Assembly: GCA_900088475.1 (NCBI GenBank)
Contig: FLMG01003917.1
Location: 1 to 64,000, forward strand
Reading direction: 5' to 3'
Source: Hyphochytrium catenoides
Taxonomy: Eukaryota; Protista; Hyphochytriomycota
DNA: 64,000 bases
The number at the start of each line of letters is the position of its first letter. Within the stretch, counting starts at the first letter, position 1. The notes under the pieces are model-generated. The model saw nothing but the letters and a program-made list of their open reading frames with translations. It was not told the DNA's origin and did not search any database. The translations under genes and the position numbers were made by a program. This document shows, piece by piece, positions 7,301 to 57,178 of this stretch.

Positions 7301-8585
7301 GGCCTTGGAGAACCTCGCCGCCGAGAGGAGGAAAGAGAAAGAGAGAAACAAGCTGGCAGCAGTGCAGCACCGAGACTACTGCGCACTCTGCTTCGAGTCC
7401 GGACCACGAAATGAAGTTGTAGATTTCAGAGAATTTGAAAGCCGCTTCTCGTCCATGCTGAAAGGTGTGAGCGCTCCTAAACGACTGAAGAAGAGTCACA
7501 CTCGGGAGCTGCAGAAGTGTCAGAACTGCCCGGTCGCCTTCCATCTGACCTGCTTAATGCGTCACGGTCTACCCGGTGGCGCCCGCTGCTTCTCCCACAA
7601 TTGTGCAACCTGCCACAGAGGGGCGTCAGCAGTTGCTGGGATGATGTTCCGCTGCGTGGTATGCCATCACTCCTACTGCCAGGACCACTTGGACTATGAG
7701 AGGACCTATCCCGCTGACGAGAAAGAGGTCTTGGTCCCTCTTATTCAAGATCTCTACCTGAGGAAAGCAAGGATAGCGCAGAATGTTCAGTTTATCCACT
7801 GTGGGTGTGAGCACTGCGAGGTGAGTATCACGAATGAGCGGAAATGAGGCCTCGGCGTCAGGAAGCTGAGAAGACTATAGGTTAGCAGTCGGAGATGAGA
7901 GAAGACACATATCGTGGCGTGTTGGATTGAAGGTCGGGCTAGAGGGCCGATAGGAGGATGGGTGACAGAAGACGAGTAAGAAGAAGAGTATCGGAGAAAG
8001 ACGAGGGCATGATCATATTGCTTCCTTCTTCCATGCTATGCGGGAAGGCTGTTTAAGCTGACCCATCTGACATCTGCTTGCAGGTCTGTGGCAGTGGCGA
8101 TTCACTTCGCTCTAACCTCTTGGTCTTCTGCGACGGGTGCAACAAGGCTTTCCATCAACGCTGCGCCTCCATCCCGAGCCAGCAGCTGAATGTAGACTGG
8201 TAAGAGCGGCATTACTCTAGTTCTTGAAGAGATCGAGCACAAAGCCCACTACAAGCTCTTCTGGTCCATATATTTTTTTCCCTCTTCGTCATCGTCACTC
8301 TATCCTAGTAGATGCTTTTCAGTCGTTGCTATATTTCAGTCATTTATCTTCTGGGATCCTTCCTGCTAACTTCTTTGTCTATTTCTTGCCAGGTTTTGCA
8401 GCAGCTGTAGGCCCAGAGAACCATCCCCAGCTCCTTCCCCTTCGGGTCCAAATGGCCCAGGTTTTCCTTGTACGTCTACCACTCCGTCTATATCCTCATC
8501 GGAGCCAACGTTGCCCACCTCTTCCTCTACTCTCCAAGTCTCTCCGTCGTCTTCCGCGGATGTGATCCACATCATAGATATGTAA
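4335..8585 (+). CDS. SNF2-family (ISWI/HELLS-like) chromatin-remodelling ATPase with C-terminal PHD fingers; multi-exon, 5' end uncertain
   Basis: Motifs: MRDYQIDGLQWL, G|ILGDDMGLGKT (motif I across an intron), DEGS (II), LTGTPIQNN (III), LVSTRAGGMGLNL, DSDWNPAIDLQAQMRVHRIGQ (VI). A Cys/His-rich region follows. Splicing 7820|8084 and about 8200|8392 gives a PHD finger CE|VCGSGDS...FCDGCNKAFHQRC...W|FCSSC. Stop TAA at 8583-8585. Confidence 0.9.
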
Positions 8586-27105: not shown

Positions 27106-30100
27106 ATGGAGCAAGACGAGGCGCCACCGCCATTGTTTGCCTACCTGCATTCTTCTCCGATTGTGAATGTTCTACCTTCTAATGAGACGGTGAGGCTGGC
27201 AGTCTTGGTAGCTCCGACGTTGCTCTTTTTCTTCTCCGTCTTTACTCGGTTAGTCTCTCTAATCTACATTACCTGCTCAGGCCTGAGTCGCTTACACTCC
27301 TTGCTGGCTCTCTTTCTGTCGCTTGCCCTCGTAGATTTGATTGTCTTCATTCCTCTCTATCATTAGCGCTTGCCTTCTTGACTGTCTCTCTTCAGGTCCC
27401 TGTCGATTTATTGGATGTGAATAGGGAGAAGAGTTTCATTTTTGAGTGCGTGCGGAATAGCAGGAAGAGGATAAGATGGGAGGCAAACGTGGCTACTATC
27501 CGGACTTTTTCAGGGGTTATGGCCAAAGGTAGCATGTCCATGAAAGCTTTCATGATAACAGCGGTCTCAATTTTCCTTTCTTCTTTTATGGGTGGCCTCC
27601 CCTTACAATCTGTTCACTCGCCCTCACGGTATCCGTTAAGTTTCCTCTTAGGTATAGACCCGCACCGTTGCTCCCGTCGTTGCCGATATGCCTTTAGGTC
27701 ACTCTTGCACTCTTCACCAGTGCTGCCATTCTCATCCTCAGCTTCTTAGGTTGTCGCATCCTACATTTCTCTGGCCATGGATTGCCGGGGTTTATCACCT
27801 TTGAAACCTCCGATGGTGCAGCGCACTTGTTGACCGAGGATCAACTCAAGAAGAATATTATGCCCCACAATGACGATGGCGAACGACCGGAAACGAAGCT
27901 AGTCTTTATTAGCGCTTGGTCAGACTTCATCCGCAGATGTGCTGCTTCTTATCTCTTCTCGGTCGCACTGACTGCATTGACCACATGCTTCTTGATTCTT
28001 TGAATCGGTCGCCCTCAAGGCGAGCTACGTTTAACTTAGTTCCTCTCTGTCTTGTTTAGCCCAGTGAACTCTCCGGCGCACTTGGGGCCAGCCACCTTGT
28101 CCATTTGTTTGCTTGTCCTCCACTTTACTTCTTATGTTTCATTCTATGCATGAAGGTATTCTCACCATTTCGACCTCTTCTACCCGTTTTCTCTTGAAAT
28201 CGTCTCTCACTTGTGACCAGCCACTCCGAGAGTATTGCCAACGCCTTCGTGGCCGCCGGAGTCCCTCATGTGGTTGCCATCACTTTAGACGCCAAAGTCC
28301 TAGACCAGGCAACCATTGAGTTCTCTCTCAACTTCTACCAGCACCTTCTGGTGAGCCTTATGTCAGTTTTGGTTGCAGTCGTTCCTCTTTGCTGTTGTCC
28401 CATACCCTTGCCGCTAGTCAAGGCACTATAAAATGCCTGCCATGGTCTGCTTAGCGTGACTGCAACCTCATATTCGCATTACTAACGCCTTCCATGGCCG
28501 ATGGCTGTATGATCAGAGTGGCAAGACAGTCCGGCAATCGTTTGACATGAGCAGAGTAAGACGCATATTTGGGATTTGAGCACACTCCTTTGTCCTGCTA
28601 ATATTTTTTGTCACTTATCTTGGACGTCCCTATCTTCCGTCCTTCTACGTTCCTCTTTCACGCACCGGAAACTTATATCAAAAATGTCACCTACTCTAGC
28701 GCCTGCTGGAAGTAAGTGAGGATAGGCAGCGTCGCACGGAAAACATCAAGTTTAAACTCTTGCCGGAAGAGGCAGATCATAATATAGGTAAAGTCTCTTC
28801 AACTACCTAGACGGCTACAGCCCTTTATTCACTTTCCTAGCTCGCTGGTTAGCCAGCTTGTTTTATTTATTCCTTTCCACGGCGTTACGGACTTAGTCTC
28901 TTAGCATCACTTCGCCCTGTAGTTGAACTCATTACCATGTCTCAGCGCCCTCTCAGTAAAACTTTTGTCTAACCCAACTTCGCGATAGGGATCTTGAAAG
29001 ATCTGCGAGAAGGGACCGTGCTTGATATATCAGAGTAGGCCTCCTAATCCTTCCTTTAGTATATGATCTGTGGAGTCTCTATTCTGCTGTTTTCCTGGCT
29101 TCCGATTGCACCTCTAGCTAGCGGTTAGTGTTCAAACCTCTAATCAGCCCAATCTCATCACCAGGCCGCCGAGTATAAATCTTTGCGATGCATCCCCAGA
29201 CATGAGTTTGTTTATCGGGAGATCTCTGCCAATGTTTCAGCTATTCAGAGCATTTCACCAGCCTCCCCGATTGGTATGCCTGTATAGCTCCATGAGGAGT
29301 GACACTGTAATCTTGAGCCCCCTTCTGCTACTCTTCCTTATTTCGTTCCTCCATGCCAGCTTCAAGTTATGGGACCTTGCTAGTGCTTTTGTCAAACTGC
29401 TTCTTGTCCACCTGCGGGTATGCTCGCTTAGAACGTGTTCCTCTGGATCCTGGAAACAAAGCGTCGTTTTAGCTGGTCGAGCGCTAACTGCTTTCCATCT
29501 CCCTTTAGATCACGATTCTTGGAATGGCAGGGATAGGCAAAAGTCAACTAGCTCTAAGAGCTTGCCATTACGCAGCAGAGAGGCGATGGTTCCATTCGCT
29601 GTATTTCTTAAGAATAGGCGATGTCGAGGTCCGCTTTTTCTCCTGTCAAACATGTTTGGCCTTGACCATGACGTCCAAGCTGCTGTTCCCTGCGCTTACC
29701 TCCATTGTCTTTGGGCGGAAGATATTATTGTCCATTGCAGCTTCCTTTCCTTTCGATGCACAAGCATCACTCCTCGGATACAACTTCCAATCCGTATGTG
29801 TCCTTACTCTATGATCAACTTTTGCTACAGTTATCTACGGAAGGGCTTCTCACGGCATTTGCTAGAGCTCTCAAGCTGCCATACGGGTCGCTTGAGGTGT
29901 TCATGGCCGCGTTGAGGGGAAAATTTGATGGATCGAGCAGGTGATGCGGTTGTTATCGTGCACGACCATTATCCATCAGTGTATTAATTGATTGTATTGT
30001 TCCGTGCTTCGATTATGCCGCATTCTAAACTGCTGCTGAAACCTCTTTACAGGTCTCTGCTACTGATTGATGGATGTACAGAGCGAACAGTGGGTGACTC

Positions 30101-32869
30101 ACTGTTTAGAGACTTCCTCATGAATGTCCACAACCGGAGCACAGCGCTTAAGCTCCTCCTTACAAGCACTCAGAAGGTTTCCTATTATGCTTTTGCTGCC
30201 TAAATAGCCATCTTCTAAGTCTCCGTTATGAAATGTATGGGAACGTCGTTAACATGACTCTCATAGAACTTGTTGTTTTGAATACATATGCAACTTTGCG
30301 AACTGCTTATTCTTGCGTGCATATAGTTGGGCCACATCAAGGATCTCGCTGAGAAGGTTATCAGCATTGATCGCTTTTCGGACTTCGAAGCGGCGATGGT
30401 GTTTTGCAAGAGATCTCCCAGGTAAGTCTTTACTGTCGCTTATCTCGTCTTCGTCTACACAGTACTAAGGCGGTGCGGCCGCGCCTCAACAATCTTTGAA
30501 ATGGTATTGTCTCACTATTAGCGAGCCTTGAATGCAGTTTGTGCTTCACGCGTCCCGACCGGCCTAGCGTTCCAATGTTTCTCACAACTAGCACTATTTC
30601 TGATGTCTCTTGTCTGCTATGCAACTTGGGCACCAGAGCTCTGACCCCAGAAGAGATGTGTGGTGATCCTTGCCCTCCCAGAGGATATCCTGCTAGCTTT
30701 CTTTACCAGAAGTTGGGCGAGCAGGCAGTGCTACAGAAATGCAGTATGACTTCAAACATTCTCAAGCCTATCAATGTGCCACTTTCTCATAAGAGTCTGA
30801 ATAAGCGTGGACCTTCTCCTGTTTGATTCTCTCGGTACGATGTCGTCCTTCCTACCACTTACCACTATTTGAATTGCGCTAGTGGGCCACCCTGAGGTAT
30901 TGGCAAGGGTGGCAAGTGAGCTACTAGGAAAAGACCTGCGTCTCCATCGGAAGGAGCTTGAGGCTATGGCAGACAGGGAGGTCAAGAAAGTCGATAGAAG
31001 GAGAAGAGTCGCCCGTTTGAGTGGGTCCATCTGGTAACGGACCAAGCACGCTTTCTGTCTACTCACTCGCAGCCCTAATCCGTCGGTCCAATCGCCTCCT
31101 GTTACTTTTCACTTACGTTACTAACAGGTCCGGCTATCATGCTTATGTTCTGCAGAGGTTGGAAGGAAATGAGGAAGGTAAGTGCGGGAAAGATACATGG
31201 TCCTTAGCGAGAGAGGAGCATTCGCTGTGTTCTTGTAGAACCGTACATATGATGCCTGAATCACTTTTCACTTCTTTTGTCATAAGGTACTCTTGTATGG
31301 CTCCAAGCTCTTGAGCGCTTTATGCAGTCCGACGCAATGGCTGGCGTCGCAGTAGGGAAGCTTTTGCGAAGTACAAAGCAAGATTCGGTAAGAAAGTTTG
31401 ACAGGTTTGTCAACTTCTACGTGTTAACTGCTCTCTCTTTTGCATCAAGGGCTCTACTTCCCTTCCTCCTAAATTGCAGACTGGGGCCCTTCCTCACAAC
31501 TCACGTAATACTCCCATGTGCAGGGCTCTAACCGGGACGCGGAGACTGAGAATAGTTATGACCATGCTGCAGAAGACCCTTTACCTTCCCCTCCCTCGAT
31601 CTCTTCCTCAACACATCGTGTGGGCTCGGTCTCTTCCTCTTCCCCTACTTCTCTCGCCACGTTGTCTCTCTCTGAGGAGGGGTTGAGCTTCAAATTCCTG
31701 GTCCCCGAGCTTCAAGAGTATTTCTACGATCTTGTGCCCGAAGCATGTCATAGACCTCTCTCTGAAAATGGGCTTTGGTTCATGCGAAATCAGGATAAAA
31801 TATGGGGGCATAATGGGACAAGAGGTGAGAAAGAGACGGCTGCAGTTTCACCTCAAAGGGACTGAGAGTTATTGATGACAGTGTTGACCAAGCCACAAAT
31901 GGCGTAAAAGGCGATGTTCTTGGGCGGGGTAAACAAAAGCTCATGAACAGAGGGTGAAGTGGGATTTCGGGTATCAGTGATGAGTCAATAAGGAAGAGCC
32001 AAAGGACAAATGAATCTGTGAGGAACTGAGGGTTATCTTACCATCTACTTGGCAGGTCGCTCTCTGGTGACACTTGAGGAGTTCTGTCACTTTTGGAAGT
32101 GGTTTGCGGCCTTGATACCATGTCTTGCGGACGCACAAGGTGGCACTTTCTCCTTGTCTTCAACCTTTCCCGTTCAGTTCTGTCTTCGTCTAGCCTATGA
32201 CGTTTGTACTTCTCTCGGGTGCCAGCCGTGTTCTTGCACAATTTCTCGTCACGAAGGACCCCATATTCCTAACCTTATGAGCGTAGGTCTATATCTCCCT
32301 AATGGTGTCAGCTAATACTCTCTGATATCAGGTTTATGGGAATCGTACGTTATTTTGGGCTTTATAGGTGGTCAGAGATGCTCTGAGCTTTTGCAGGACG
32401 CTGGGCAGTTCCTGGTCCGCTTCTCTTTTACGAATAGGGGTGCCCTTGTGTTGTCCTACAGAGACCATCAGAAGAGATTAAGGGTCAGTCAAATAGATAT
32501 TTACTCGCTACTAAGTCTACTGCATCTATTTGACTCACGCACCCCGTCTAACCCAATTCGTGTCTCTGCAGGAGGCGCTTATCCATTACTCACCGAGCTC
32601 TGGGTACAGAGTGCTGGTACGTGCAACATGATCACTGGTGAGGACACTTAACCGGCTCACATTCTCTCTCCCTTTCTCTTCTCTGACAATGCCTCCTGTT
32701 TAATCCCTTCCTGTTCTGAATGGAATTATCTCCTTGCGACAAGGTTGATCAGAGGGAAGAGACCTTTCCAACTTTGGCAAAGCTGCTTCAAAGTTTACCA
32801 GTGTTGACCTCAATACTTCTCTGGAACAAAAACAAATTTGTCCCAAAGGAAAGGGTACTGCATTTATGA
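27106..32869 (+). CDS. CHAT (caspase-like) protease - STAND/NB-ARC-like NTPase - STAT-type linker/SH2 protein, paralog A; about 20 exons
   Basis: CHAT: ILHFSGHG (about 27758-27781) and LVFISAC|HS, with the Cys codon split at 27918|28221. NTPase: FIGR, Walker A GMAGIGKS (29521-29544), Walker B LLLIDG, KLLLTS and a GHP (GxP) motif. SH2: FWKWF...LW...ILGFI...GQFLVRFS...ALVLSY. Stop TGA at 32867-32869. Confidence 0.85.
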
Positions 32870-33094
32870 AGTAGGCAGCCTAATGTATGATCACCAGAAT
32901 CCTAAGTGGACACTCCGATCACGTCTGAAATCTATTGTATGTTAATTTGTCTCCTCGAGCCATTATCGAGGAAGTGAGGCATAAGCGAAGGGCGGGATAA
33001 GAAGGGGGGACCCTTGTGTTCACAGTCTATATGTTTATTTTAACTTTAAGGTCCTATATGTTTGTCTTCACTTTGTTTACGCGAAAGTTTATTT

Positions 33095-36000
33095 CTATTC
33101 AGGAGCTGGCGGTTCTAAGCCATCTATTGCTTCACTTCCGCTTTGACAAACACTCAGTGCTTCGAACTTACTAATAAACATCGGATCCACATAGCAGTAC
33201 ATCTCCTTTAGAAAGCGGCAGTCTTCCAATAGCGACGCAAGGGAGTCGAAAGATCGGGTAGTACCATCATCAAACTGACATTACGGTGAAAAGGGAGGTG
33301 ATTAGTCATTACACTTCGACAAGACGGAGAGCATAGGCGATGATATAACAAAGCCTACACTTCATCTCGCCATCCACCAATGTCAGCGGACTTAAGAGAA
33401 ATAATGTGAAGATGGAGCATTGATTACCTACCGCAAGATGAAACATTCTGCGTGCGTAATGTACCCGAGAATGTCTAACTCTGCTCAAATCTTGCTCTCC
33501 ACTTCTCCTCTCGTGGTGTCGTCCCCCGCAATAGGAAAGGACGAGGGCCCGCGGGAAGGAGAAAGAGAATCGCAAAAGGAACTGGCCTGGGCAAGTTAAA
33601 ACCTGCTCAGCTGCCGCTTTACTTATAAAGCCAATCAGATAACGAGAGTGCCAAAGGGCAGCTGAGGCAGGTAGTTCGAGCAGAGGAAGTAACGAGGAGA
33701 ACCAGCTCCAGAAGCACTTGAACTGGTCTATCGTTACATATCCTGCAAACATAGTGAGCAATGTTAGACCGCAAGTGTAAGGAGGGAGTAGAGTACCACA
33801 AGCAGTCGGAGAGGGAGGCAAGACCCAAGAGTTACCCAGCAAGTTCTTCTCACCTCCCTGATTCTCAATATCAGTTCGACTCCAAAGGGCCCTCTGACCC
33901 TTGAGAAATAACAGAGCACCATGAGACAGTGTGCGAACTTCATGACAGTGTGACAGCGCAACGCCAGCGTGGGCCACTCGTTCGTCAAAATAATCCTTCA
34001 CTTGCTCTGACAATCTGAACAGTGCAAAAAGAACATGACAGAAGAAGGAAAACAGGTAAATGAGAACAAAGCACGTGCCAAACTAGAAAGGGGGCGTCAG
34101 CTCACACATCATAGTGTACACAGATAGGTTGAAGTCTGCCAATTCCGCCCCACGTTCTCTCCAATCNNNNNNNNNNNNNNNNNNNNNNNNNNNNNNNNNN
34201 NNNNNNNNNNNNNNNNNNNNNNNNNNNNNNNNNNNNNNNNNNNNNAAGCTAATGCTCCTAGCAGCAGTGCATATTGCGCCTGGATGTCCACCTGAACAAA
34301 TTGATGGTTACCTAAACGCCGCCCCAACAACTCGTAGGGATGGCAGTCCCACCCAACGACAGAGGTAGAAAACAAGATCAGTGCCGTTTCTCATATACCT
34401 AATGTTCGCAGCACTGGGTGTGCAGCAAGAAGCTTCAGCGAGTGTCTCGTTGAGCGGATGGTTGCCTTGTCTTCTACAGCCAACAGGTCCGTGTGCTGAA
34501 GTTTCCTAGTCATAGAGTATGTTACCTAATCAGCATCGTTGAGGAGTATCACCGTGCCTTTCCAATTTTCCTCTCCCATATCTTGTCAGTGGGTGGACCC
34601 CCGTCTTCGAATCGACATCTGAGCTCACCTAGGTAATCTCTCCAGAAATAACTGAGTCGAGCTGTTAACCTCCTCTTGATTAGCCCCCGTAAGAGGGAGC
34701 GGCTCCAAACTAATAATGCCAGTGGAGAAGTCTGGCAAGAGGGAAGAGACCTGGAGGAAAGGGAGATGAGTCTCCTTCGATGAGCATAATTCTGACCAAC
34801 ATTAACCACTAGAGGAAACGGATTGATCAACGAATTACCTGTTCAGGTTCTGTCCTTGCGGTTATTACGATCTTGAGGTCCTCCTTTAGCTTCTTCAGTT
34901 CGCTCAGGACCCGTCTAAGACAATTAAGTTGCTGCTCACCAAGAGTTGAGTGAAAGATTGCTGAAGAGACTCCATCAACCAAAAGGATGCATCTGCATAT
35001 GGATAGACGAATAATCATGACAAACGTCAGCATATCTGAGAGTAGGTTGGAGGACAAAGATAGTTGGTAGGGAGTCTGACTGCGAAGCACATAGGTGATC
35101 ATTTCTCCGGTCAGGCAGTGTGGTGCAAAATGGCCAGCCATTCAAGTGTGAAGGCACCATGCACAGGCAAGAGTATGAACATAGTTTGAGATGGTGGGAA
35201 TATTATGCAACCCAAATCTCATAATGCTTTGTAAGAAGCTTCCAATCAGGACTTCAACCAATAGACAAAAACTCGNNNNNNNNNNNNNNNNNNNNNNNNN
35301 NNNNNNNNNNNNNNNNNNNNNNNNNNNNNNNNNNNNNNNNNNNNNNNNNNNNNNNNNNNNNNNNNNNNNNNNNNNNNNNNNNNNNNNNNNNTCGACAAAG
35401 CATCAACCGCCAGGGGATCAAATTGCTATTCGAAGCGTTAATATCCCCTTTTCCGCCGTGGCTTGTCATATAAGAGAAACCTTCTGCTGCTTGAAGACAA
35501 AGATACCGCTACTCTTGGTAGAAAATGTCTCTAGGTGTACTCCACTCCCCTTTTGGTTGTGCGCCCCCTTACCTCCTGGTTCTCCAATCGGACAGTGAAG
35601 AAGCAGTCGAAAGAGGTTCTGTCTTCTAAATGCTTCATAACTTGCAGAGCGAGCTCCGTCTTTCCTATTCCTGCCGATCCTGTGATGATAACCTACAAGT
35701 GAGGAACGTAGTACCGGCCAGCGCTTATTAGGTTCCAGAGTGCGATGGAGAGTGAAACAGACCCTAATGGACCCAGCGGTCCAGGACAACGCTTCAATGT
35801 GACATACCACATGCTTTTGCATGAGGAGCTGAAGTGTCTCTCTGACACAGGCTGATCGACCGACGAAAAAGGGTTGAGGTGTAAGTCCGTTTACTCTTTT
35901 GGGCTTCCTACAGGTAAGGGCAGAGTCAACCTATCTTCAACATTCAAACAACATTCAGAAGCCTATCTTTGCTTAGAATTGCTGTCAGTGTTTTTCTCTT

Positions 36001-38238
36001 CTTGCTCTTTCCTCCCGGTGGGTCTGCAGCATCCACCTCCTACCATTATCAAAAGGGTAGGTCATTATTCTCTGAAGAGTACTCACACTGTAACGTCAAG
36101 TAAGCATCCAGGACTTGTCTTGCTAATAAAGATGACTGCGCAGCAGTAGAGGCGGCGGATAGAGCTGGGTCAGCCTATTTCGTATAGTAGGGTGAGTAGG
36201 GAACGAGGGACTTACCTTCCTGATGTCCGCGGTCAAGGGGAAATAGTTTGAATTTGTCTCTCTCTTGCCTGTTCGTCCACGACTCACTTAGAGATAGTGT
36301 TACCTGCATATAGTCCACGGTTAGTTGGCCAGCGAACCGACATAGAGTATATGCAGCTAGCGTCGTTGATGTTCTCCAAGTCGCCAGAGTGTATCACCAG
36401 CACTTCACAAGACTCCCCTTGCTTACTACTCTAGGTTGCCAAATGATCAAGATAGTTCTAAATGATATATATATGCCCCTCAGCCAAAGGAGGTAGGAGT
36501 ACATGACACACCAGCGCAGCGTCAAAGGCATCCCTGACAGTGCCACCTTTCTGCAAGAGAGAGAAGATGGCAAGATGTTGTGGTCGTGAGGAATCTACAA
36601 CCCCCAATCCAGGCAGATGGCACTTTTCATTGCGGACAAAAGGAATGAAAGTCTATGTAGGCCAATTCTGTCAACGAAGAAAGAGCCAAAGGAAATAGCC
36701 AAACTAAGACACAGGTAGAAATTGCTAGCAAGTGACTGATGAAAGCCATTGTTTCAGGGGAGACGAAACTTACAATGAGGAAGTCGTAGAAAGACGTGGC
36801 AAATTGAATTGAAGCGCGGTCGAGGACCGCCTCATCTCTTGATACGGTTATGACGTGGTCTACGCCAGCTGCAAGGAAGAGCGGGACAAGGCTCTCGCCA
36901 TGGCTTCAAACATGAAAAGAGGAACAGGGGACAAGTCAGTGAGTGACTCAAACACAGCAGCCTAGTCAATGTGTGAGCTAGAGGGAGGCAGTGGAAGCAG
37001 CACAGTAAGGGATCTGATGAACTACGGCAAAGTTTAGACAACATGTGTGCGGTGCAGGTGGTCTGCCCGTAGAAAATTTGTATAAGTAATCCAGAAAGCT
37101 TCATGTTAGAAACGTAACGACCTCCAGACACTAACCATGCGCTAATGAACGCCAGCCGTGTCCTCGTGCACTGATGGTTCCTTCTTACTGCAACTGCTTG
37201 CTGGAGTTCTTCCGTTGAGACGAAATATGCAGCCCCATCTCTTTTCTCTAGTGCAAAGAAGAATCTGACAGCAGGAGCAAGATGCTAAGGTAAGGATCCA
37301 CAACCCCTGAGGAAGCGGATGGAGGGACAATGAGCTAGATGAAGAGTGAGAAGGTACCAACAAGTAACAGAGGGAGGTGAAGCAAAAGCGCTCAGAAGAG
37401 ATAAAAGAGCTAGTCAAAATATCGCGTTTTTCCTCTACTGTGCAGTCATTAGTACGTCTCCAACTAACCTCTCGCCTGGAGCCAAAATATCGTTCTTGAT
37501 GAGCTCTCCAATGACCCCGTGTCCCGATAAATGAAGAACTGGGCAGTCTATCATAGTAGAAGAAGATCAGCCTCTAGTATGTAGTACACTCAGGTAAGGC
37601 CCTTAGAAAATGTTGGGAGACCGGCGGAAGGTTAAGGAGGAGAGAGAAGCCAGAACAACCCCGGCGGCAGATTTTACGCGAACAGAAGCTGTTTTGTCAC
37701 CTTGGTCGAAGAGGTAATGCGAGATCAAGTTCACATCCGTCACGCATGCGGAACGCCATTGCAGTTCGCGGTTCGCGCTCTTTAGGGTCTGAAAAATCTG
37801 AGAGCGTTCCAGCGATAAATCCAATCCATCCATAGGGAGCTACTAGAGCAGGTACAAATGGAAGATTAATATCGGAAGAGCCGTAACTCATTCATCGACA
37901 GCCACGAAGGGCAAAGGACACATGCACTTCACATCGAAGGGCAGCGAGGAAGGTAGTAGTGGTAGGAGTAGTGATAGTAAGCTCACTGGCATTAGAACGG
38001 GATAAGAAGATCTTAGACGAGGGCGTACCCATTGTGTTCTGTTTGCCTGTCTGGCAAAGAAGCCTACAGGGAGCGCCGAAAGATATGCAAATACTGGGGA
38101 TGAAGACAGAACAGCTTTATGTGCGGACGGACTAGTCGGTGAAAATGACTGACTGCCAGTCTCGCCATCCTTTTGGGATTGCTGCATCATCTCGGCGCCC
38201 GTAACCGTCTTTTGCTTCAGTGACTCTGACATCAACAT
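33095..38238 (-). CDS. CHAT protease - STAND NTPase - STAT-type linker/SH2 protein, paralog B; multi-exon, two N gaps
   Basis: Spliced motifs: VFAYLSALP, CPVLHLSGHG, LAFISAC|HGES, AAGVDHVI, Walker A GSAGIGKT, Walker B ILLVDG, KIVITAR, GGHP, then FWSWF...LWHSRYLIGFISK...GQFLLRFS...ALVLSY. The last exon is FDDGTTRSFDSL...PPAPE*, stop at 33095-33097. Confidence 0.83.
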
Positions 38239-40357
38239 CGCGCTCGGAGGGCGACCTTGTTCTGAGACTGAGGGGAAATCTGATAATGATAGACACCAGG
38301 CTGGGAGACCACGGGTCTCCGATTCATGGTGCAGTACAGCTATGCCTGTCGGTACTTATAAAGTCTTGAGAATGTCAGAAGCGAGGTCTGGACGACAGAG
38401 AAAAGAGTTGCAACGCATCAGTTGACTGCACCGCTATGCAGCCCAACAAGAGCAGAGAAGATGTTCGAACTTGATGAGCCCCTCGGGTGACAAAAGTATC
38501 TGCTTCATGTTGTGTTATAGGAGGATAGCACAGAGAGCATAAGATAGACAGATGAGCATTGAAGCAGGGCACATTGCCTGAGAGGAGCTTGACTGGTGGG
38601 TCAGTTAGGTGCGAGAAGACTAAGGAACTATAGACGGACAACCTCCCTTCGAACGGAGGCCATAAGGAACTTGATGGATAGTGGAACAAACAGGTGGTAG
38701 GAAACCCAGCGATCACTGTGTGTTGAAGGCTGACAGCAGGGTAAGCATCGAGTCAAGAAGGAGAAGAAGAGGAAAGAGCAGGGAGAGAGAGCGAGAGCGT
38801 CAGAGAGAGAAATATCAAGCAAGTTTGGACGCTTTTGGGGGCGAGGTGGCCATCTTTGGTGAGGAGTAAAGGTCTTACCCAACGGGGGGGACAGTCCGAA
38901 GCCTAAGGCAATATATTAGTACGCAGAGATGACCATCACTCCGATCTCCACTCTGTCTCGCGGCCCGCCCCCCATGTCGAACGAAGTACTGTACAACTGT
39001 ATGACAGTTAGCGCCATTCTGCCCTCACTCAACGGCTGTTGTTGGTCCCATACTGACATTTGCTCGACTTCTTCTGCTGCTGCTGGTCTGTTTGTTGTCA
39101 GTTGTGGCTGCTGGTCACGGGTGCGTCTATCATCACTGCTGTTGTTGGATATTATCTTGAAATGACTAACAGGTTGCTTGGTTGGGGAGGAGAGTGTATG
39201 TTGATAATGAGAGGAGGGATGAAGAGGAACTTATAAGACGAGTAGCAGCAGGAAGAAGGAGAATGAAGGTTTTGAACACCAGTTGGGATTAGGACGAGAT
39301 ATGTCACACCTCATTGAAAGGCAACCCATCAAGAAAACTCCTCCTGTGGCAGTGCCACCACGGAACACTTGCAGAACGCAATGTTTTCGTGGCAAAATGG
39401 ATGAAGATAACGGTGTTGTTGAGGATGATGATAGTGGTGGGACAACATGAAAGCCAGAAGAACATATTGAGGTCTGGAACCATCTTTATCAGTAAGAGAA
39501 GAAAATGCTTCTTCTGTTGCTGGTGCTGTTGGCTTATAAGTTATTGTTGGTAAGGCAGAAGATCTTGCACGTGGCTAAGTATGATTGTTGTGCTGATGGC
39601 GATGTGGTCTAGATAGTAATAGGGTTAGCTAGGCCCTTGGAAGATGGCAGGCGGTGTAAATAGATTCCCATCTTCCTCCTGGCCCTGCCACTCCTATTTA
39701 ATAAAGAGAGGAGGGATAGAGCAGGTAAGGCACTGAAAGCGATGATGGGTAATCAGCTGTGACACGGGCACTTACGTACTATGGAACACCTACGTACTAT
39801 GGAACAGTGGATGATTGAGACTAACTAATAGTACTTAGCTAGCAGCAGAACCTCTATTCCTGTGGAGCTGGCTTCTTCTGATCAGACATCATTGTCATCT
39901 GCCTACCGTGCTGCTTTGTTACTAACTTTTCATAGTCGCTTGATCCTGACGATCCTTGATGATGGGTTCGTGGTGCTAGCTAATGGTGAGTCTCTACGCT
40001 TTTTGTTATTAGCAGGAGCAAACTACTTTCCTTCTTCTGACGGTTAATAATGCTGTTAGCTTCCGTCACTACTTCTTTCTTGTTGTTTAGATCTTGCATC
40101 ACTATCTAGCCAAGCAAGTACTCATTGGTATGACGGGGGAGAGTGATGCTAAGGATAATTGGAAGCCTCGTCGTTTATCTGCTGCTATCATTGTTGTTGA
40201 CTCATACTATCTTGGACGGGAACGAGAGGAAAGATGCCACCAGAAGAAGAGGAGTGCACGCAACGCCCTCGCTCTTCTGCTTCTTCGTCTTCTTCATCAT
40301 TAGGTCAAGAAAGAACTACTGCTAAAGTTTAATACCGCGCCTCAAGCAATCTCGATC

Positions 40358-41059: not shown

Positions 41060-44000
41060 ATGGGAAAGCAGCAGGGTTACGATATCTCAAAGCAAACCCA
41101 TGGCCCTCCAAATCAGGACAATGGGGTCCCTCAGGAGATTAGCAGGGTTCCTGACGGCGCCCCCGGAGAGGAAGAGGAACTGCTGCACACCGGAGCTCTG
41201 TACCTAAAGCGCAGCCTGTCTTCGACACAGGTTCGAATCCTAAAGACTACGGAAGCGGTACCTAAAGTACTGTGTCTAACGCCAACACTTGCACAGGCTC
41301 TATCCAAGAAGATGCTTGGCATCCTCAACTCCTTTGAAGACAAGCTATCAATCGTAGAGACGAAGATGCTCCCTATCCACAACACTACACAGGAGCTCAA
41401 TGTAGCAAAGAATAATATTGATCTGACTATCTCAGAGATTGGGAGGATACAAGCCAACTTCAGGGTGGCCAATGAAGTTGATAACGTTCTGCGGAGAGGC
41501 GTTGATGCAGACACTGCCGCCTTCGTGGAGGCTGTGGCAAAGATGAAGAGTGCACTGGCATTCTTGAAGAGCAATCCCAAGCTGAAAAGTGCGGAAAAAT
41601 ATACTCGCGCATTAGAGAAGTCTTTGGGACGGGTAAGCCTGCAGGGTATTAGCGAAGAGGGAAGGTTAAGAAGGTGACCTCGAGGTGTAAGTAAGCGGGA
41701 GGAAACCCAAGGAAATGTTATCAGGCGAAGACAGGGAGGGATTTACTATCACTGGAATTTTCGGTAAAGCGACAAGAACGAGCAGGGACTTCAAGAAAAG
41801 AATGACACAAAAGGACGCAGGATTGTGATGCTTGAGCTCATTGCTTGTAAAATTATAGGCAACCAAAGATTGTGAGGCAGAGCTTCTACGACTCGTTTGC
41901 GCAGGAAGCAGCACTACCGCGGACTTCAGAGACATGCTTAATCTTCCGTAAGATTGGCTTCTGTCATGTCTGTTCCCTATTCCTTCATTCACGCGTGACC
42001 TATGAGTAGGAAGCCAGCCACAGTTAAAGCCAGACTGTTATGCAAGTGCCTCTACACAGCGGAAGAGAAGAGCTTCATGCAGGTCTGACCTCCTACTACA
42101 ATGCGCTGAGATCGTGTTCCTTTTTAGTTCCTAGGCACTTTCTATTTCCCAGCCGTAAACACGTTAACCCAAGTCTGCTGCTTTCTTCTTCATCTCGCTT
42201 TTCTTGGCATGCATCCACTTCCCTTCCATTGGCTTCTTCATGTCGTTCTTTTCCTATGTCCGCTCTCTCCCAGCTCATTCTTGGGCCTTCGTTAAATGAC
42301 TTCACTTTGAACGCATTTGTTTATCCCCAGCAATATCTGAAGTATCGAGCTTCGGCTGTAATGCATGCGCTGGACGTTATAATGGCCGACGCTCATGAGG
42401 CTGATAAAGGGTTCAGACATAGGACAAGCTCGCGCTTCCAAAACTTTGTGGAGGCCTTACAGGTTGGTAGAGCTAAGCATCATTGCCAGGATTGCTGATC
42501 CCAGCCAACTGCATATCTGACGCCTTTCCAGCCCCTAAACAATAGCGATTAAGCCGCCAATGCAGGGGTGGGATGACAACGACATTTTTTCTAACACAAA
42601 CTGTCCAACTCCACCTTAGATAGAGTTCAACGTCGCCATGAAGATCCTTGCAGATCTACCTGAAGCCAAAGCTTTATTTCTGGCATCAGTTCATCCGGCC
42701 ATAGAGAGCTTTTCAGGGAGAATACAGGAGGTTCTCTCTAGGGCAGAACTCACGCATGCTGATTTGGGCCAAGCTTGTAAGTCTTCTACGCCCTTTCGGA
42801 AGAGGGTCCAATCTCTGGAGAATCCAAGGATTGCGTAGAACAGTTCTTCTTTTGCTTGTATAACAAGGTATACTCCTATTGCAGCAGCCCAGGCGCCAAA
42901 TAGCCCACAGCCTACTCAATCCGCAAGTGCAGCTACCTCGGTTGGGGTTAAGTCTATTTTCGAGGTTCTAGCCATTGCTGAAAGCCTCGACAACGCGCTG
43001 AATGACTTCGAGGAGGTGCTAAACATTGAAGAGGTGAGGAAGGCAGAGTGACGCCAAGGTGGAATGGCGGTCAAGGGTTTGACTATTGGATAGCTGTGCA
43101 GTGCCTACGCAACGCTCTTCGTGGTTATCTTGGTTGGCCTGAAAGAGTATGTCTCTCTTTATTTTCCAACCAGGATGAGAAGGAGAGTGCTCCTGACTTT
43201 ATTAGTCCTGAAGTGCTATCGGTGAAGGATCGACTCCAGTACCTTCACACCCAGGTACCTCGTGTGTCGAAGTGTTGTGTGTGCTCTTGTAGGCAGTGGT
43301 TGATGAAGAGAAAAGATGGGTTCTAACAGCGAAGAGAGGGAGGGGGTTGACGAAGAGAGAAGAAGAGAGGAAAGGATGGCAAGGGCTCAAATGCAAGTAA
43401 AGGTTGGCATGGCCATGTTAGGACCAGAATGGCCTCGACGCAATAAAGAAAGGTTTTTCCAGTAACAGACTACAAAGCCAGAAACTAAAGAGCCCTCCGT
43501 CCCAGGTCTTGGCATCAGGCAAGCGTCTCCTCCTGCGTTTTAAGGATATCATTCAAAGCGACGCGACAAGCTCAAAGGCCATAGCTAAGGACGGTGGCAT
43601 TGACCGCGTGGCGCTGAAGGTCGATGTTTACCATCGCTCCTATACTCTGTCCTGACTACATCGACTCCTTGGCCCGTAACTCCGCCGTGCGTCTCTTAAG
43701 CTTAGCAGAGTGCTGCATTTATTCTAGAACCTTGCCTCCCCTAGCTTGTCGTTGAACCATGCGTCTCTTGTTCCATTTGAAGGTGGTCAAGTTCTGTCGT
43801 GAGGTCGTGGAATATGAGCAAGTCATAGCTTCGCTTATAATGGAGGGAGCAGATGCAGAAAGCCAGCAAAGCGCTTTCAGACTATACATCGGTAAGAAAA
43901 GGGATCGGACGAGCTGTTGTCTAACCCCTCTCAGCTACGTATCATTGGTTCTGGATGTATGTTCCCGGCTTTTCAATTATATTTTCTCGCCGCCAGCCTC

Positions 44001-45152
44001 AGCCTCAGCCTGATGCGTCCTCTTCAGATTCCTTGTTCGTCCAACTCAAGAAGAGCATTGAGCTTAAAGCTCAGACCCAACGGAAGGCTTCCTCTCTCGT
44101 TCCTGCCATTTTCCTGATGAACAACTTCCAATACATCTACTCCAGCATCTGCTCAAGTAGAAATGGGGGCTCTACCGTCGAACCAAACGCTAGAGGAGAC
44201 CGGGTTAGAAATTCTGTAGGAATAGGCGACGATGAGTCAGAGACTCTGAGCACTGCAAAAGATGCTGGTCAAGAGACGGCCTCATCGTCTGATCAAAAGC
44301 TGTTAGACCTTGTCAGCACAGAAATACAAGAGGAACTAAAGTCACGACTGGAGAAGGAAAAGCAGGATTATATAGCACACAGGTCCTTTAAGTTCCTTTC
44401 TTCACAGCTGACGATGATTCTGCTGGTTGTCGGCGCCCTTGGCCGTTCCTTTTTGCCTCTTGAGATAAATCCTCTCACTTTCCACCATCGGCTTCGCTTA
44501 CGTTCTTAATATTTGCCATCGATATTTGCGCATATTCAGTTGGGATAAGGCTGCTAGCTTCCTAGTGGATGTTACGGAGCCCCTCCAGTTCCAGAAAGGG
44601 ACGAAGCTTCTGACCCTTGAGAGCGGGCGGCAAATTAAGGAAAGGTTCTCGGTAGGTCTAGAGTCGGTCTCTAAGGTCCCTTATACGTTTTTAACTTATA
44701 CTTTCTCTCAAAACTCTTAAAAGGGCTTTATTCAAGCATTCGAGGAGTCTTACAATAGCCAGGTAATGTACATGCGGATGTTTTACGACGATTATTCTGC
44801 TCCGTGCCATTGGCTTTCCGCCGTGGTCTCTCGACATATCCAGTCACCTAATGGTTCAACAGACGCATCTCGTTGTTCCAGCCCAGGACTTGAGAGACGA
44901 ACTAACGCGAAGATCCCTGATCGCCCTAGTCCCTCCTTACCGCGAGTTCTATGAGAAGTAAGTTTCGCGTTCTCCTCAAGTTATCATTTGGACTTTCTCT
45001 CCCGCTATTGTGCTACTCTGCTTCGGCTAATGTCTCCAACCTGAAGGTATTCAAAAATCCAGTTCTCGAAGAAGCACGCTGACCAGTATTTGAAATACAA
45101 GCCCGAAGATATTGAGGCTTTGCTGAAGCGGCACCTCGGAGGCGGCACCTGA
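41060..45152 (+). CDS. EXO70: Exocyst subunit Exo70 (EXOC7); multi-exon
   Basis: N-terminal MLGILNSFEDKLSIVETKMLPIHNTTQELNVAKNNIDLT. C-terminal AIFLMNNFQYI, RQIKERFS|GFIQAFEE, VPPYREFYEK|YSKIQFSKKHADQYLKYKPEDIE. These are the Exo70 hallmark segments. Stop TGA at 45150-45152. Confidence 0.9.
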
Positions 45153-45417: not shown

Positions 45418-47100
45418 CTAATGGCTTTCAATGAGCACATATTCATCCTCTTCGTCACTCTCTCCAGCACTTACGGCTTCGTTCACCATGTCCACCTGCA
45501 AGTGGTTATTGTTCAGCCAATTAGCTGACCAATGACAGAGGGGAACAAAGGCATGGAGAAGAACAGAGCACGGAAGCACAGTACCTCGCTTGAATAATCG
45601 GGTGTGCTCGAAGCTATTGAGAAAGGACATAAGCAGTGCTGAGAGACGCCTTGCACCCTGCCGCAGAAGTCTTGAAAATCTAGCCTGTCCTTTATATAGA
45701 AGCCAATTGCCAAGGATGGGTCCACGTTCTCCATGCTCATTACGAGAGGAGTGCCGCAAGACGTAGTGGCAAGAAGGTCGGATGAGATGGCACTGCCGGA
45801 CACCTGGAGAGCAGGCTGGGTGGTGTGTGGATCGAGAAGATGCAACTCAGATCCATGAACACCCACGAAATACACAGAGTGGCCCCTTTTGCCTACAAGA
45901 GAAACGACCAGGTTCTTAGTCGAGTACTGAAGAGAGGACAGTAAGGGGACAGACAAATTGAAGACAGAGAGCCGCGAGGACCAGGTACAGGGAGAGTACA
46001 TCACAAAGGCAGCCAACGCGCGGCGCCCTAGAGTGGAGACTGAGTGAAGCAACATGAATATACGGTACAGGCACTCCACTTGAAGAGTAATAAGCGATCG
46101 GGAATGTTCAACAGCTAACGACCACATGCCGAGTCTCAAGCTTTTCTCCCACCCTGACCGTCTCAACTATTAATATATCCCCTCTTGACCTGCCTTACCT
46201 CCTATGATTCCGGTAGACTGGGGAAACTTGAAGAACTCAATGATAGCTGGTAAATAATCGCCGTTGATGTGGTCTAAGCCCAGCCGGAGGGGAATGAGAA
46301 TGAACAGTGCCTTGGACCACTTGCTCTCAGGTGCAGCAGGAGGAGGATTCAGTAAAGGGTCGTAGAGAGCTGTAGACGGTGTCCCTGCCTCCTTCGGCTC
46401 GTCGCTGTTACTATTTGATGGCGATGAGGAGCATAGTCCCTCAACCACATCAAGGTAGATTACCCCCTCCTGCGGCACTAACATTTCCATTGTGCCCCCT
46501 AACTTTTCTGCATGCAGGTGTACTAGATCTCGCAGAACCTGCGCTGCGGTGGTAGGGCCATACCACTCTCCAGGAAGCTTGTCGTACTGCAGCCCCACCT
46601 ACAAACGCCAAACATAACATCTAAGGACGGACGGTCTTACCGCTCGTTAGAGCGACCTACCTGAACCATGTTGTGAATGGAGTAGATTGCTTCCACTCTA
46701 GGTACATCGGCGAACCACCTCAAGATGCTCGCCCCTCCCTTGGCTGACCTAATATTCTGGTTGAATAGGTGGCGTTGTAAGGCTTGGGCCAAGATCATCT
46801 GTCCTGTTCTCAGCATACATCCCCATCCAGAGTCACTAGAGATGATCGTAAGAGAGGTTTATGACTACTCTGTGTGATTGCCAAGCAGGCAACATACCTG
46901 GTATAGTCGTAGGGATCCATAGGCGCAAAGTCCCTGCGGTAGGTGAGCCACTTGATTGCATGGAACATCTTTATGTATGCCGCTTGCTCTGGGGTTAGCT
47001 CTCCATGGCCACCTTCAAAGCGACTGCCCAGAAGCCAGACCACTTCATCGCAGTTGCGAATGTCGAAAGGACGTATCCCATGGGCAAATTGTGAAGCCAT
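45418..47100 (-). CDS. ATG4: Autophagy cysteine protease ATG4 (peptidase C54); 5 exons
   Basis: WLTYRRDF, T|SDSGWGCMLRTGQMILAQAL (catalytic Cys), GEWYGP, LIPLRLG, GIIG|GKRGHSVYFVG, LDPH (catalytic Asp/His), DPSLAIGFY, and a C-terminal LIR-like EDEYVLI. Confidence 0.93.
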
Positions 47101-55681: not shown

Positions 55682-57178
55682 TCATGGTCGCAAAAGATCG
55701 TCGTAGGTCCTCAGAATGCTGGTGCAATGCTCCATTGCCTCCTCTATGTCTTCAACTGCACAGCCGTTTCTTTGATACCAATGCAGGTAAGCCCTGTGGT
55801 CAAGCATAGTCTCTGCCCTCTCTAAGGCGTGGGAGATTACCGGAAGAACCCCAGAGCCATTTGATGCCACAGTTATTACAGGCTCGTCTGTGGAGGCCGA
55901 GGAAGGATGTAACTCGCTTTGCAGGGCTTGAGGATTCCAAGGCACGCTGCGGCAGAATTTCTTGAGATAGCCTTGCAGTTTAAGACTGCTCCCTGTACTT
56001 CTCGAAGCCCTACTAGCACTACTACCATAAGATGGGCTGCTAGATACTCCCATGTTCTGAGGGGTTAGTTCCTTGAGGTGGAGGACCGCCAGAAGGTCAA
56101 TATGCTCTGCATAACGGGCCGTCGCGGTGGTCTTGGTGCGCTCATGGTAGCCGTAAGTGTATGCATAACGCCGCACGAGGTCCTCTATCACTGCTTCCGG
56201 AGATCCACTCCCTGTGCGGTTGGTGGAAGTGGGGGCATTTGAAATGGAAGTAATATCAATCACCTTTGCGCTCGGCATAGGACATACCCGTCGTACCAGT
56301 TCCATGAGGTTGAAGGGGTGACTGTGCCCCGTCAAGCGCCGTCTGGCATCCGATAACATGAAGTCAGCTAGATCTCTGACGATAAGTGCATTCAATGCCG
56401 CCATATTCTCAGAAGTAGTGGGCTCTTTTGCTTGCTTTCCGTGCACCTCTTGAGCTCGGAATAGTAAATGATCATTGTCTTTCATTATGATGCAATCAGC
56501 AACGTCCTGGCAGGCGCTGAGGGCCAGACAGAAGTTATAGTGCTGTACAGGAGTATCGCCATTCCTAAATGGAGCCACTACGACCGTGCTTAAGTAAGCT
56601 TTTGGGTACTCCTGCCGGAGCAATTCGGCAAGTGCTGAGCCGACGCCGGAGCCGGTCCCACCAGCCAAGGACATAAAAAGATTCGTGCCGTCAAATCTGT
56701 CAAGACCCTCTACCTGCAGTCGAAAGGTGTTTTCAAATATAGTTTCTAGCGACGCCTTCTCCGAAAGCTCGTCCCCACACTTCCAACCTTCTGCCTGAGT
56801 CCAGGAAGCTGGGACTGCTGGCCGTTGGACAGCCTTATGATATCCCACCCCCCAGTTGTTTCCGCAGCCAGAGTGCTGGTAGATGCTCCGATGAATATAG
56901 CCGCTGCCATATGCTCGAGTATGACTGGCCAGTTGCGCTCCTCTAGCAATAAGAGGCCGTTTCAGTACTCTTGGCTCTGTATCTACGTACAGTACTGGAC
57001 CAAGCGGCATCCACTCGTCACCAGAAGAGGAGCCTGCATGAGGTCGCACACCACTGTTGCCCTTGTTCAGTATACGACTTCGCGGCCGTTTTTGACGCCG
57101 TTCACTTTCGGAAAGATTCCATAGCTCTTCGGCTATCTGGATGCCGCATTGGCCCACAAACACAGACGCAACCGTCAT
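55682..57178 (-). CDS. Divergent tubulin of the delta/zeta(eta) class, most like zeta-tubulin; intronless
   Basis: VGQCGIQI, VDTEPRV, GCGNNWGVGY, tubulin signature SLAGGTGSGVG, APFRNGDTPVQHYN and AYLHWY. There is no acidic C-terminal tail. Confidence 0.88.
   Translation of the reverse strand: MTVASVFVGQCGIQIAEELWNLSESERRQKRPRSRILNKGNSGVRPHAGSSSGDEWMPLGPVLYVDTEPRVLKRPLIARGAQLASHTRAYGSGYIHRSIYQHSGCGNNWGVGYHKAVQRPAVPASWTQAEGWKCGDELSEKASLETIFENTFRLQVEGLDRFDGTNLFMSLAGGTGSGVGSALAELLRQEYPKAYLSTVVVAPFRNGDTPVQHYNFCLALSACQDVADCIIMKDNDHLLFRAQEVHGKQAKEPTTSENMAALNALIVRDLADFMLSDARRRLTGHSHPFNLMELVRRVCPMPSAKVIDITSISNAPTSTNRTGSGSPEAVIEDLVRRYAYTYGYHERTKTTATARYAEHIDLLAVLHLKELTPQNMGVSSSPSYGSSASRASRSTGSSLKLQGYLKKFCRSVPWNPQALQSELHPSSASTDEPVITVASNGSGVLPVISHALERAETMLDHRAYLHWYQRNGCAVEDIEEAMEHCTSILRTYDDLLRP

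Follow-up and report, generated by a model that had tools for sequence, protein, structure and literature searches.

A probably functional CHAT-STAND-SH2 gene of Hyphochytrium catenoides and its tail-to-tail paralog

Introduction

In the apoptosome (Apaf-1 with caspase-9) and the inflammasome (NLRs with caspase-1), a STAND nucleoside triphosphatase (NTPase) oligomerizes and activates a caspase-fold protease by proximity. Here, we describe a gene of Hyphochytrium catenoides that, to judge by the domains it encodes, may follow the same switch logic, with two differences: protease and switch reside in one polypeptide, and a phosphotyrosine (pTyr) reader takes the place of the WD40 or LRR repeats. 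The gene, hereafter paralog B, occupies positions 33095-38238 on the minus strand of the first 64,000 nucleotides of contig FLMG01003917.1 (assembly GCA_900088475.1), a stretch referred to below as the window. It lies next to a sister copy, paralog A (27106-32869, plus strand; about 20-21 exons), which carries the same series of motifs.

Three groups of proteins provide the closest comparisons. Fusion of CHAT to an NB-ARC or NACHT NTPase followed by TPRs is a layout that has been reported among NLR-like proteins of bacteria and fungi (e.g., PMC10197012). Metagenomic proteins of this kind (P0103-P0107), which form the outgroup in our tree, share with B an N-terminal CHAT joined to a STAND NTPase but end in a TPR array as sensor, where B has a linker and SH2 module. 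With the STATs (STAT1/3/5/6 and Dictyostelium STATa), the resemblance is confined to the end of the linker and the SH2, which align with STAT3, including the motifs GFISK and LLRFS. Unlike the STATs, B has neither a coiled-coil/DNA-binding domain nor a tail tyrosine, and its SH2 follows a protease and an NTPase. The third group, the oomycete SH2/CHAT domain-containing proteins (such as Saprolegnia diclina SDRG_08366, here P0021, and Phytophthora infestans P0071), has the same order as B of CHAT, AAA_16/NACHT-type NTPase and STAT-type SH2. It shares the motifs LHFSGHG, SACH.ES, GIGKT, LDG, GGHP and FLLRFS with B, which matches the family profile over its full length. B is 28-30% identical to these proteins. 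It differs from them in being shorter in its middle region and extended by ~40 residues at the N-terminus, in carrying an insertion that follows the catalytic His, in the greater length of its SH2 CD loop, in a Glu-to-Phe change in the BC loop (also found in A) and in an intron-rich structure of 18 exons. We found no paper describing a CHAT-STAND-SH2 protein; the layout is present in public oomycete proteomes as uncharacterized entries. B is thus a diverged additional member of a known but unstudied stramenopile family and not a new kind of system.

Our reading, to which we assign a probability of roughly 0.68, is that B is a genuine gene, probably a functional one, and an ancient lineage-specific inverted duplicate of A within the stramenopile CHAT-STAND-SH2 family, for which we propose the role of an SH2-gated STAND switch.

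Results

Gene model and signature motifs

Paralog B runs from an ATG at 38238, the first of its open frame, to a stop codon at 33097-33095. Its 18 exons are separated by 17 introns, all of them GT-AG, and the joined model of 2658 bases (885 codons) contains no stop when the two assembly gaps within the gene are given their true lengths. The encoded domains, a CHAT-like protease, a P-loop STAND NTPase and a STAT-type linker with SH2, come in the same order in A, and blocks of the two proteins are collinear over the whole gene. The stop codon of A lies at 32867-32869, so that the genes converge tail to tail across a spacer of 225 bp (32870-33094). A preliminary description of this DNA, made from the sequence alone, had proposed this position and strand for B, this domain order and this arrangement; all were borne out.

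That description had also stated that the catalytic His and Cys, Walker A, the GxP motif and the SH2 Arg are kept, and each could be located. The CHAT His stands in LHLSGHG (codon 37521-37519), and the Cys in FISAC/HGES, its codon split by a phase-2 intron (37137, 37136 and, across the intron, 36903) exactly as in A. Walker A is GSAGIGKT (35680-35657), and the GxP motif is GGHPGAIC (34291-34269), in an exon that continues directly into the first gap. The βB Arg of the SH2 falls in FLLRFS, at 33572-33570. To these we can add Walker B (ILLVDG, 34991-34971) and the SH2 Lys in GFISK. A different segment, LLAAHPVLRTLG, was considered as the GxP motif and rejected when tblastn with outside proteins placed the true motif in the next exon. 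The sequence between motifs is very different in the two copies, and the pair quoted earlier in illustration, KGGTVRDAFDAAL in B (36550-36512) and SGKTVRQSFDMSR in A (28517-28555), is correct.

Family membership

Pfam, family and structure searches were run on single exons of B, and the joined spliced model was used in the local alignment, hidden Markov model (HMM) and tree analyses. An exhaustive search with the single exon encoding linker and SH2 returned STAT-type SH2 proteins and one protein combining CHAT, AAA_16/NACHT and SH2, the Saprolegnia protein P0021. Searching from P0021 revealed a family that extends across the oomycetes, each species being represented among the matches listed by roughly one full-length protein, as against two copies here; an Ascophyllum protein was more distant, and the CHAT-NB-ARC-TPR proteins lay further out. 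In a local hmmsearch, a profile built solely from outside members aligned with the joined B model over three collinear segments, for a score of 258.9 bits (E = 5e-81) that exceeds chance similarity. The same profile scored the pieces of A at 422.6 bits and mapped both genes exon by exon.

Generic domain models gave weaker matches, as is usual with small exons, though consistent ones. Outside members pass Pfam AAA_16, and the Walker A exon of B scores 21.7 bits with NACHT, 21.7 with nSTAND3 and 18.9 with NB-ARC, all under the cut-offs. For Pfam CHAT (PF12770, cut-off 24 bits), P0021 reaches 40.6 bits and the core exon of A 18 bits, and single exons of B gave no match. The SH2 models score 21.5 bits in B (cut-off 21) and 28.1 bits in A. 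No Pfam repeat family (LRR, WD40 or TPR) matched any exon of B as a sensor, the C-terminus being occupied by linker and SH2, and no exon matched STAT_alpha or STAT_bind, the place of which is taken by CHAT and NTPase.

The homolog from the brown alga Ascophyllum nodosum, P0102, lacks both CHAT catalytic residues (LHFTWNG and LTAASAK, against HFSGHG and SACHSES in the family) and retains the P-loop, GGHP and the SH2 Arg. By its sequence, it may represent a form of the switch whose protease is dead.

Searches of the 61-Mb genome with three exons of B and with the family profile detected nothing beyond A and B, which answers the earlier call for a genome-wide count of members. A six-frame search with Pfam SH2 found one further exon only above the cut-off, in an unrelated gene (G000:C573:9317-9466, minus strand; 28.8 bits). 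The corresponding search with the generic CHAT model returned no match and missed even A and B; it is too insensitive in so intron-rich a genome and is silent on other CHAT genes. A weak P-loop match to the Walker A exon of B (E = 0.03) lies at G000:C637:17936-18034 on the minus strand, inside an open frame of 980 residues, possibly a further, intron-poor gene for a STAND-type NTPase.

Origin by duplication

Aligned as a pair, paralogs A and B show 33% identity; in the family alignment, the figure is 31%. By domain, identity is 36% in CHAT, 26.5% in the NTPase, 20% in the middle region and 35% in linker and SH2. A pairwise search of A against B gave almost no match in the middle third, where the profile of outside relatives was needed. 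Compared with the oomycete proteins, A is 32-37% identical and B, as noted, 28-30%.

To place the two copies, we built a tree from 779 columns under LG+C20 with posterior mean site frequencies (PMSF), rooted on the CHAT-NB-ARC-TPR proteins. A and B group together with support of 99/97, their clade is sister to the oomycetes plus P0079 (a Logan protein) at 98/97, and Ascophyllum falls outside. Their branch lengths are 1.52 and 2.74, respectively, that of B being 1.8 times longer. At least six introns occupy the same alignment column in the same phase in both genes, including the phase-2 intron in the catalytic Cys codon, and four more lie within 1-4 columns of each other in the same phase. Moreover, the two proteins share 16 derived residues relative to the oomycete-wide consensus. 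No adjacent paralog stands beside the two outside orthologs whose contigs were read; a convergent neighbor of the P0079 ortholog, of 954 residues, was examined as a candidate and is unrelated.

The sister grouping, the common introns and derived residues and the lack of an adjacent paralog in the outside contigs all argue that the duplication is specific to this lineage, took place at the DNA level and is old. A and B are as far apart as either is from the oomycete genes. The picture that emerges from these comparisons, an old, inverted tail-to-tail duplication, agrees with the earlier proposal, which had named phylogeny as a check on whether the copies are sisters.

An alternative is that A and B are not sisters, B descending from an older duplication whose second copy was lost in oomycetes, and that long-branch attraction has drawn the two together. 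Both branches are indeed long, A is nearer to the oomycete proteins than B is, and identity between A and B is no higher than that between A and the oomycetes. However, the grouping was recovered under a site-heterogeneous model, and a constraint joining A to the oomycetes with B outside was worse by 10.1 log-likelihood units (approximately unbiased [AU] test, p = 0.017). The shared derived residues, among them the Glu-to-Phe change in the SH2 BC loop, the physical adjacency of the genes and the lack of a B-like second copy in the two outside genomes checked also speak against separate origins, which we consider quite improbable.

Gaps and selection

The assembly leaves two gaps within B. The first (34167-34245) is represented by 79 N and the second (35276-35391) by 116 N; contigs from three DNA runs of one study bridge them with 145 and 127 letters, respectively, so that our analysis corrects the assembly in both places. 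In run X1, the bridging contig is 2624 bases long and carries the two stretches at its positions 255-399 and 1447-1573. Exon 15 (GGHPGAICTAARSIS) enters the first gap, and its frame on the far side is set by DWRERGAELADF. Exon 11 (QFDPLAVDALS…, in phase 0 after the Walker A exon) enters the second, with a far-side frame of EFLSI/E/MITYVLRSQ (compare SLEVFMAALRGK in A). The reading frames flanking each gap, picked independently by homology, agree at the true lengths. The placeholder of 116 N would break the frame at the second gap, because the difference in size is not a multiple of three. Closing the gaps had been suggested as a check on B; bridging leaves its frame open, with 49 codons in the first gap (residues 601-649) and 43 in the second (residues 373-415) unread, 92 of 885 in all.

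Across window positions 32900-38400, the assembly and the contigs from the organism's own DNA runs diverge locally by 1-10%, with many indels in introns. These differences look as if they may stem from two diverged haplotypes or strains, which is perhaps why the scaffolder left gaps.

With A and B only 31-33% identical, synonymous sites are saturated for a dN/dS comparison of the two, and selection on B was therefore judged from variants, namely the listed positions at which the independent contigs depart from the assembly. Most likely these variants represent alleles, the contigs being 90-99% alike. Listed substitutions in the gene number 17 in exons and 22 in introns. Twelve of the exonic ones are synonymous and five non-synonymous (binomial P = 3e-4 at 28% synonymous sites), and all nine listed indels are intronic, although exons make up 48% of the letters read (P = 0.003). 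The synonymous bias and the restriction of indels to introns suggest that B is selected and not decaying. Among sites with the same residue in at least 13 of 14 oomycete proteins, 131 of 259 (51%) are unchanged in B and 144 of 254 (57%) in A; B alone has changed at 43 such sites and A alone at 30. B evolves about 1.4-1.8 times faster than A, yet under purifying selection, in line with the earlier view that both copies are constrained.

Several points weigh against our reading of B. The locus is found in three DNA runs of one study and in no RNA run. The 92 unread codons could hide a stop, a frameshift, a small intron or a longer loop. The junction of exons 11 and 12 and the donors of exons 1 and 3 were set by homology and phase alone. 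The variants come from a single study and are a sample, a further 60 substitutions and 14 indels being unlisted. No single exon of B reaches the cut-off for Pfam CHAT. Within the ingroup, A and B have the longest branches of all, and long-branch attraction could inflate their pairing. Finally, the mechanism that we propose below is drawn from domain order alone, and the nucleotide, protease and pTyr functions are predictions for every member of the family.

The lack of RNA and the unread codons would also suit a pseudogene, that is, a decaying or dead duplicate with lesions in the two unread stretches or in mis-modeled exons, as would the longer branch of B and its scores, which are below those of A against the family profile in every block except the SH2. 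Such a history is hard to reconcile with 17 of 17 GT-AG introns and a frame that closes exactly at the true gap lengths, with the retention of all catalytic and binding motifs, with variants that are mostly synonymous and indels that avoid exons, or with a retention of conserved residues so close to that of A. We regard a pseudogene as unlikely and favor a gene maintained by selection.

SH2 module and pairing

Exon 17 of B is collinear with the linker-SH2 junction of STAT3, and every solved structure that it matched is a STAT. The preliminary description had pointed to an insertion in this SH2 that could alter specificity. The insertion itself is real coding sequence: CGGRHHERRSGEQDLSR (33530-33480) lies between βC (ALVLSY) and βD (VRHSRVHY), lengthening the βC-βD loop by ~10 residues relative to A and the oomycete proteins. 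It was also considered as a missed intron and rejected, as it is purine-rich and its sole internal GT..AG spans about 20 bases. The suggested change of specificity fared less well. In the antiparallel sheet of an SH2, the CD loop and the phosphate-binding BC loop sit at opposite ends, which makes a direct effect of the insertion on peptide specificity unlikely by known SH2 topology.

A second difference is more relevant. The SH2 of A (window positions 32343-32390) reads GFIGG and FLVRFS and has lost the αA lysine, whereas B, the oomycete proteins and the STATs have GFISK or GFLSK. In its pTyr pocket, A, otherwise the more conservative copy, is the less canonical one. The Glu-to-Phe change in the BC loop is common to both copies. 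The 19-residue tail that follows the SH2 of B contains no Tyr, and STAT-like reciprocal dimerization through a tail pTyr is thus not indicated.

The preliminary description had likened the pair to NLR sensor/helper genes or diversifying clusters. This analogy found no support: only two members were detected in the genome, they lie tail to tail and share no promoter, both P-loops are intact, and the neighbors are housekeeping genes. Division of labor of the kind seen in a degenerate P-loop or an extra domain is not visible in A or B, the sole asymmetry being the αA Lys. A related possibility is that A and B form an obligate pair, a sensor/helper-like hetero-oligomer as in some linked NLR genes. 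The tight linkage, which has persisted very long across a spacer of 225 bp, and the complementary difference in the SH2 pockets (αA Lys in B, lost in A) would fit. The genes, however, are tail to tail rather than head to head with a shared promoter, and both copies have intact Walker A and B motifs and a complete catalytic dyad, so that neither resembles a dedicated sensor or helper; oomycetes, among the matches listed and in the two contigs checked, are apparently single-copy. Obligate pairing is accordingly unlikely, and we retain the reading of B as a probably functional duplicate of A.

Exon structure and surroundings

The window as a whole is eukaryotic DNA with many short introns, fragmented open reading frames and a GC content of ~48%. 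Exon 1 of B (38029-38238; all exons on the minus strand) contains the start codon, the ~40-residue N-terminal extension relative to A and a PVFAYLSALP motif; its 3′ end is the least certain, with several GT donors available. Exon 2 (37701-37839), the N-terminal part of CHAT, is a block shared with A at family HMM positions 42-74, with an intron common to both copies. Exon 3 (37469-37547), with the catalytic His, was placed by homology, and an alternative donor at 37516 would shorten it. Exon 4 (37136-37264) ends in the first two bases of the Cys codon, at the intron shared with A. Exon 5 (36774-36903) supplies the third base and the CHAT core HGESLVPLFLAAGVDHV; it is 49% identical to the exon of A and scores 31.5 bits with the family HMM.

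After the catalytic His (exons 3-4, 37547-37136), two consecutive segments, VIGELIKND… and then FFFALEKRDGAAY, resemble the family motif VPGKVIFEN…. This likeness points to a small duplication within the gene or to an insertion; its length would be about 8-14 residues, according to which donor is used.

Exon 6 (36512-36550), which encodes KGGTVRDAFDAAL, and exon 7 (36216-36303), which contains KFKLFPLDRGHQE, are blocks shared with A in the phase-checked model. Exon 8 (36087-36135; IFISKTSPGCLLDVT) was found as a pattern match to the family alignment, its phases and GT-AG borders being checked. The family alignment and the phase-checked model likewise define exon 9 (35808-35907), with a pre-P-loop helix and an FVGRS motif, and exon 13 (34629-34750; GIISLEPLP…QLFLERLPR). 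Exon 10 (35573-35692) carries Walker A and is the source of the weak NACHT, NB-ARC and nSTAND3 P-loop matches. Exon 11 (35259-35425) spans the second gap, bridged by contigs and with its 43 unread codons; nowhere is the model less certain than where this exon joins exon 12.

Exon 12 (34839-35104) contains Walker B and IVITAR, with two synonymous variants in its 5′ part. An intron inside this exon, hinted at by a pyrimidine-rich stretch with CTGAC and CAG, was rejected: its sole GT donor does not match the acceptor in phase, and both variants of this region are synonymous when read in the frame of the exon. Exon 14 (34399-34505) corresponds to family HMM positions 442-469. Exon 15 (34108-34291), with GxP, spans the first gap and its 49 unread codons in frame; tblastn matched it to the GGHP of oomycete and Ascophyllum proteins. 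Exon 16 (33854-34014), a helical region before the linker, is a block shared with A and matched by the family HMM. Exon 17 (33432-33742) encodes the end of the STAT-type linker and the SH2 from αA to βD, with the Lys, the Arg and the CD-loop insertion; it is the source of the above-cut-off Pfam SH2 match and of the STAT-type matches. Exon 18 (33095-33274) adds the C-terminal half of the SH2, the tail and the stop codon and is supported as a block shared with A and by the family alignment.

Housekeeping genes surround the pair: an SNF2-type helicase, an Exo70/COG3-like gene, an ATG4-type C54 peptidase and a tubulin family gene (window positions 5358-7847, 41060-44509, 45513-46166 and 55682-57178). 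The pair does not lie within a repeat-rich or NLR-cluster region.

Discussion

We propose that the NTPase of B, like those of other STAND proteins, would be a nucleotide-driven oligomerization switch, and that the C-terminal SH2, replacing the usual LRR, WD40 or TPR sensor, would keep it off until a pTyr ligand binds. Binding of the ligand would release the NTPase for nucleotide-dependent oligomerization and, through the resulting proximity, would activate the CHAT protease at the N-terminus. Since their duplication, A and B have most likely split or changed their use of ligands or substrates, with B retaining the ancestral lysine of the pTyr pocket, lost in A.

Whether the copies form hetero-oligomers or read different pTyr ligands, as had been suggested earlier, is pure speculation. 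One form of this idea is a two-component pTyr-gated switch, in which B, with its intact Lys and Arg pocket, would read the ligand and join A, the copy with the weakened pocket, by way of the STAND domains, the mixed oligomer then firing the CHAT proteases. We consider this very improbable; if true, it would amount to an apoptosome-like platform for death or signaling that tyrosine phosphorylation drives in a lineage outside the animals.

Taken alone, B is a modest evolutionary finding. As a pair, A and B are a natural experiment, two copies having been kept for a very long time in this organism where the sampled oomycetes have roughly one. Both retain the signature residues of protease, NTPase and SH2 while differing in the pTyr pocket and in loops, and they thereby offer a contrast for what the SH2 reads, one that bears on whether a STAND switch can be pTyr-gated.

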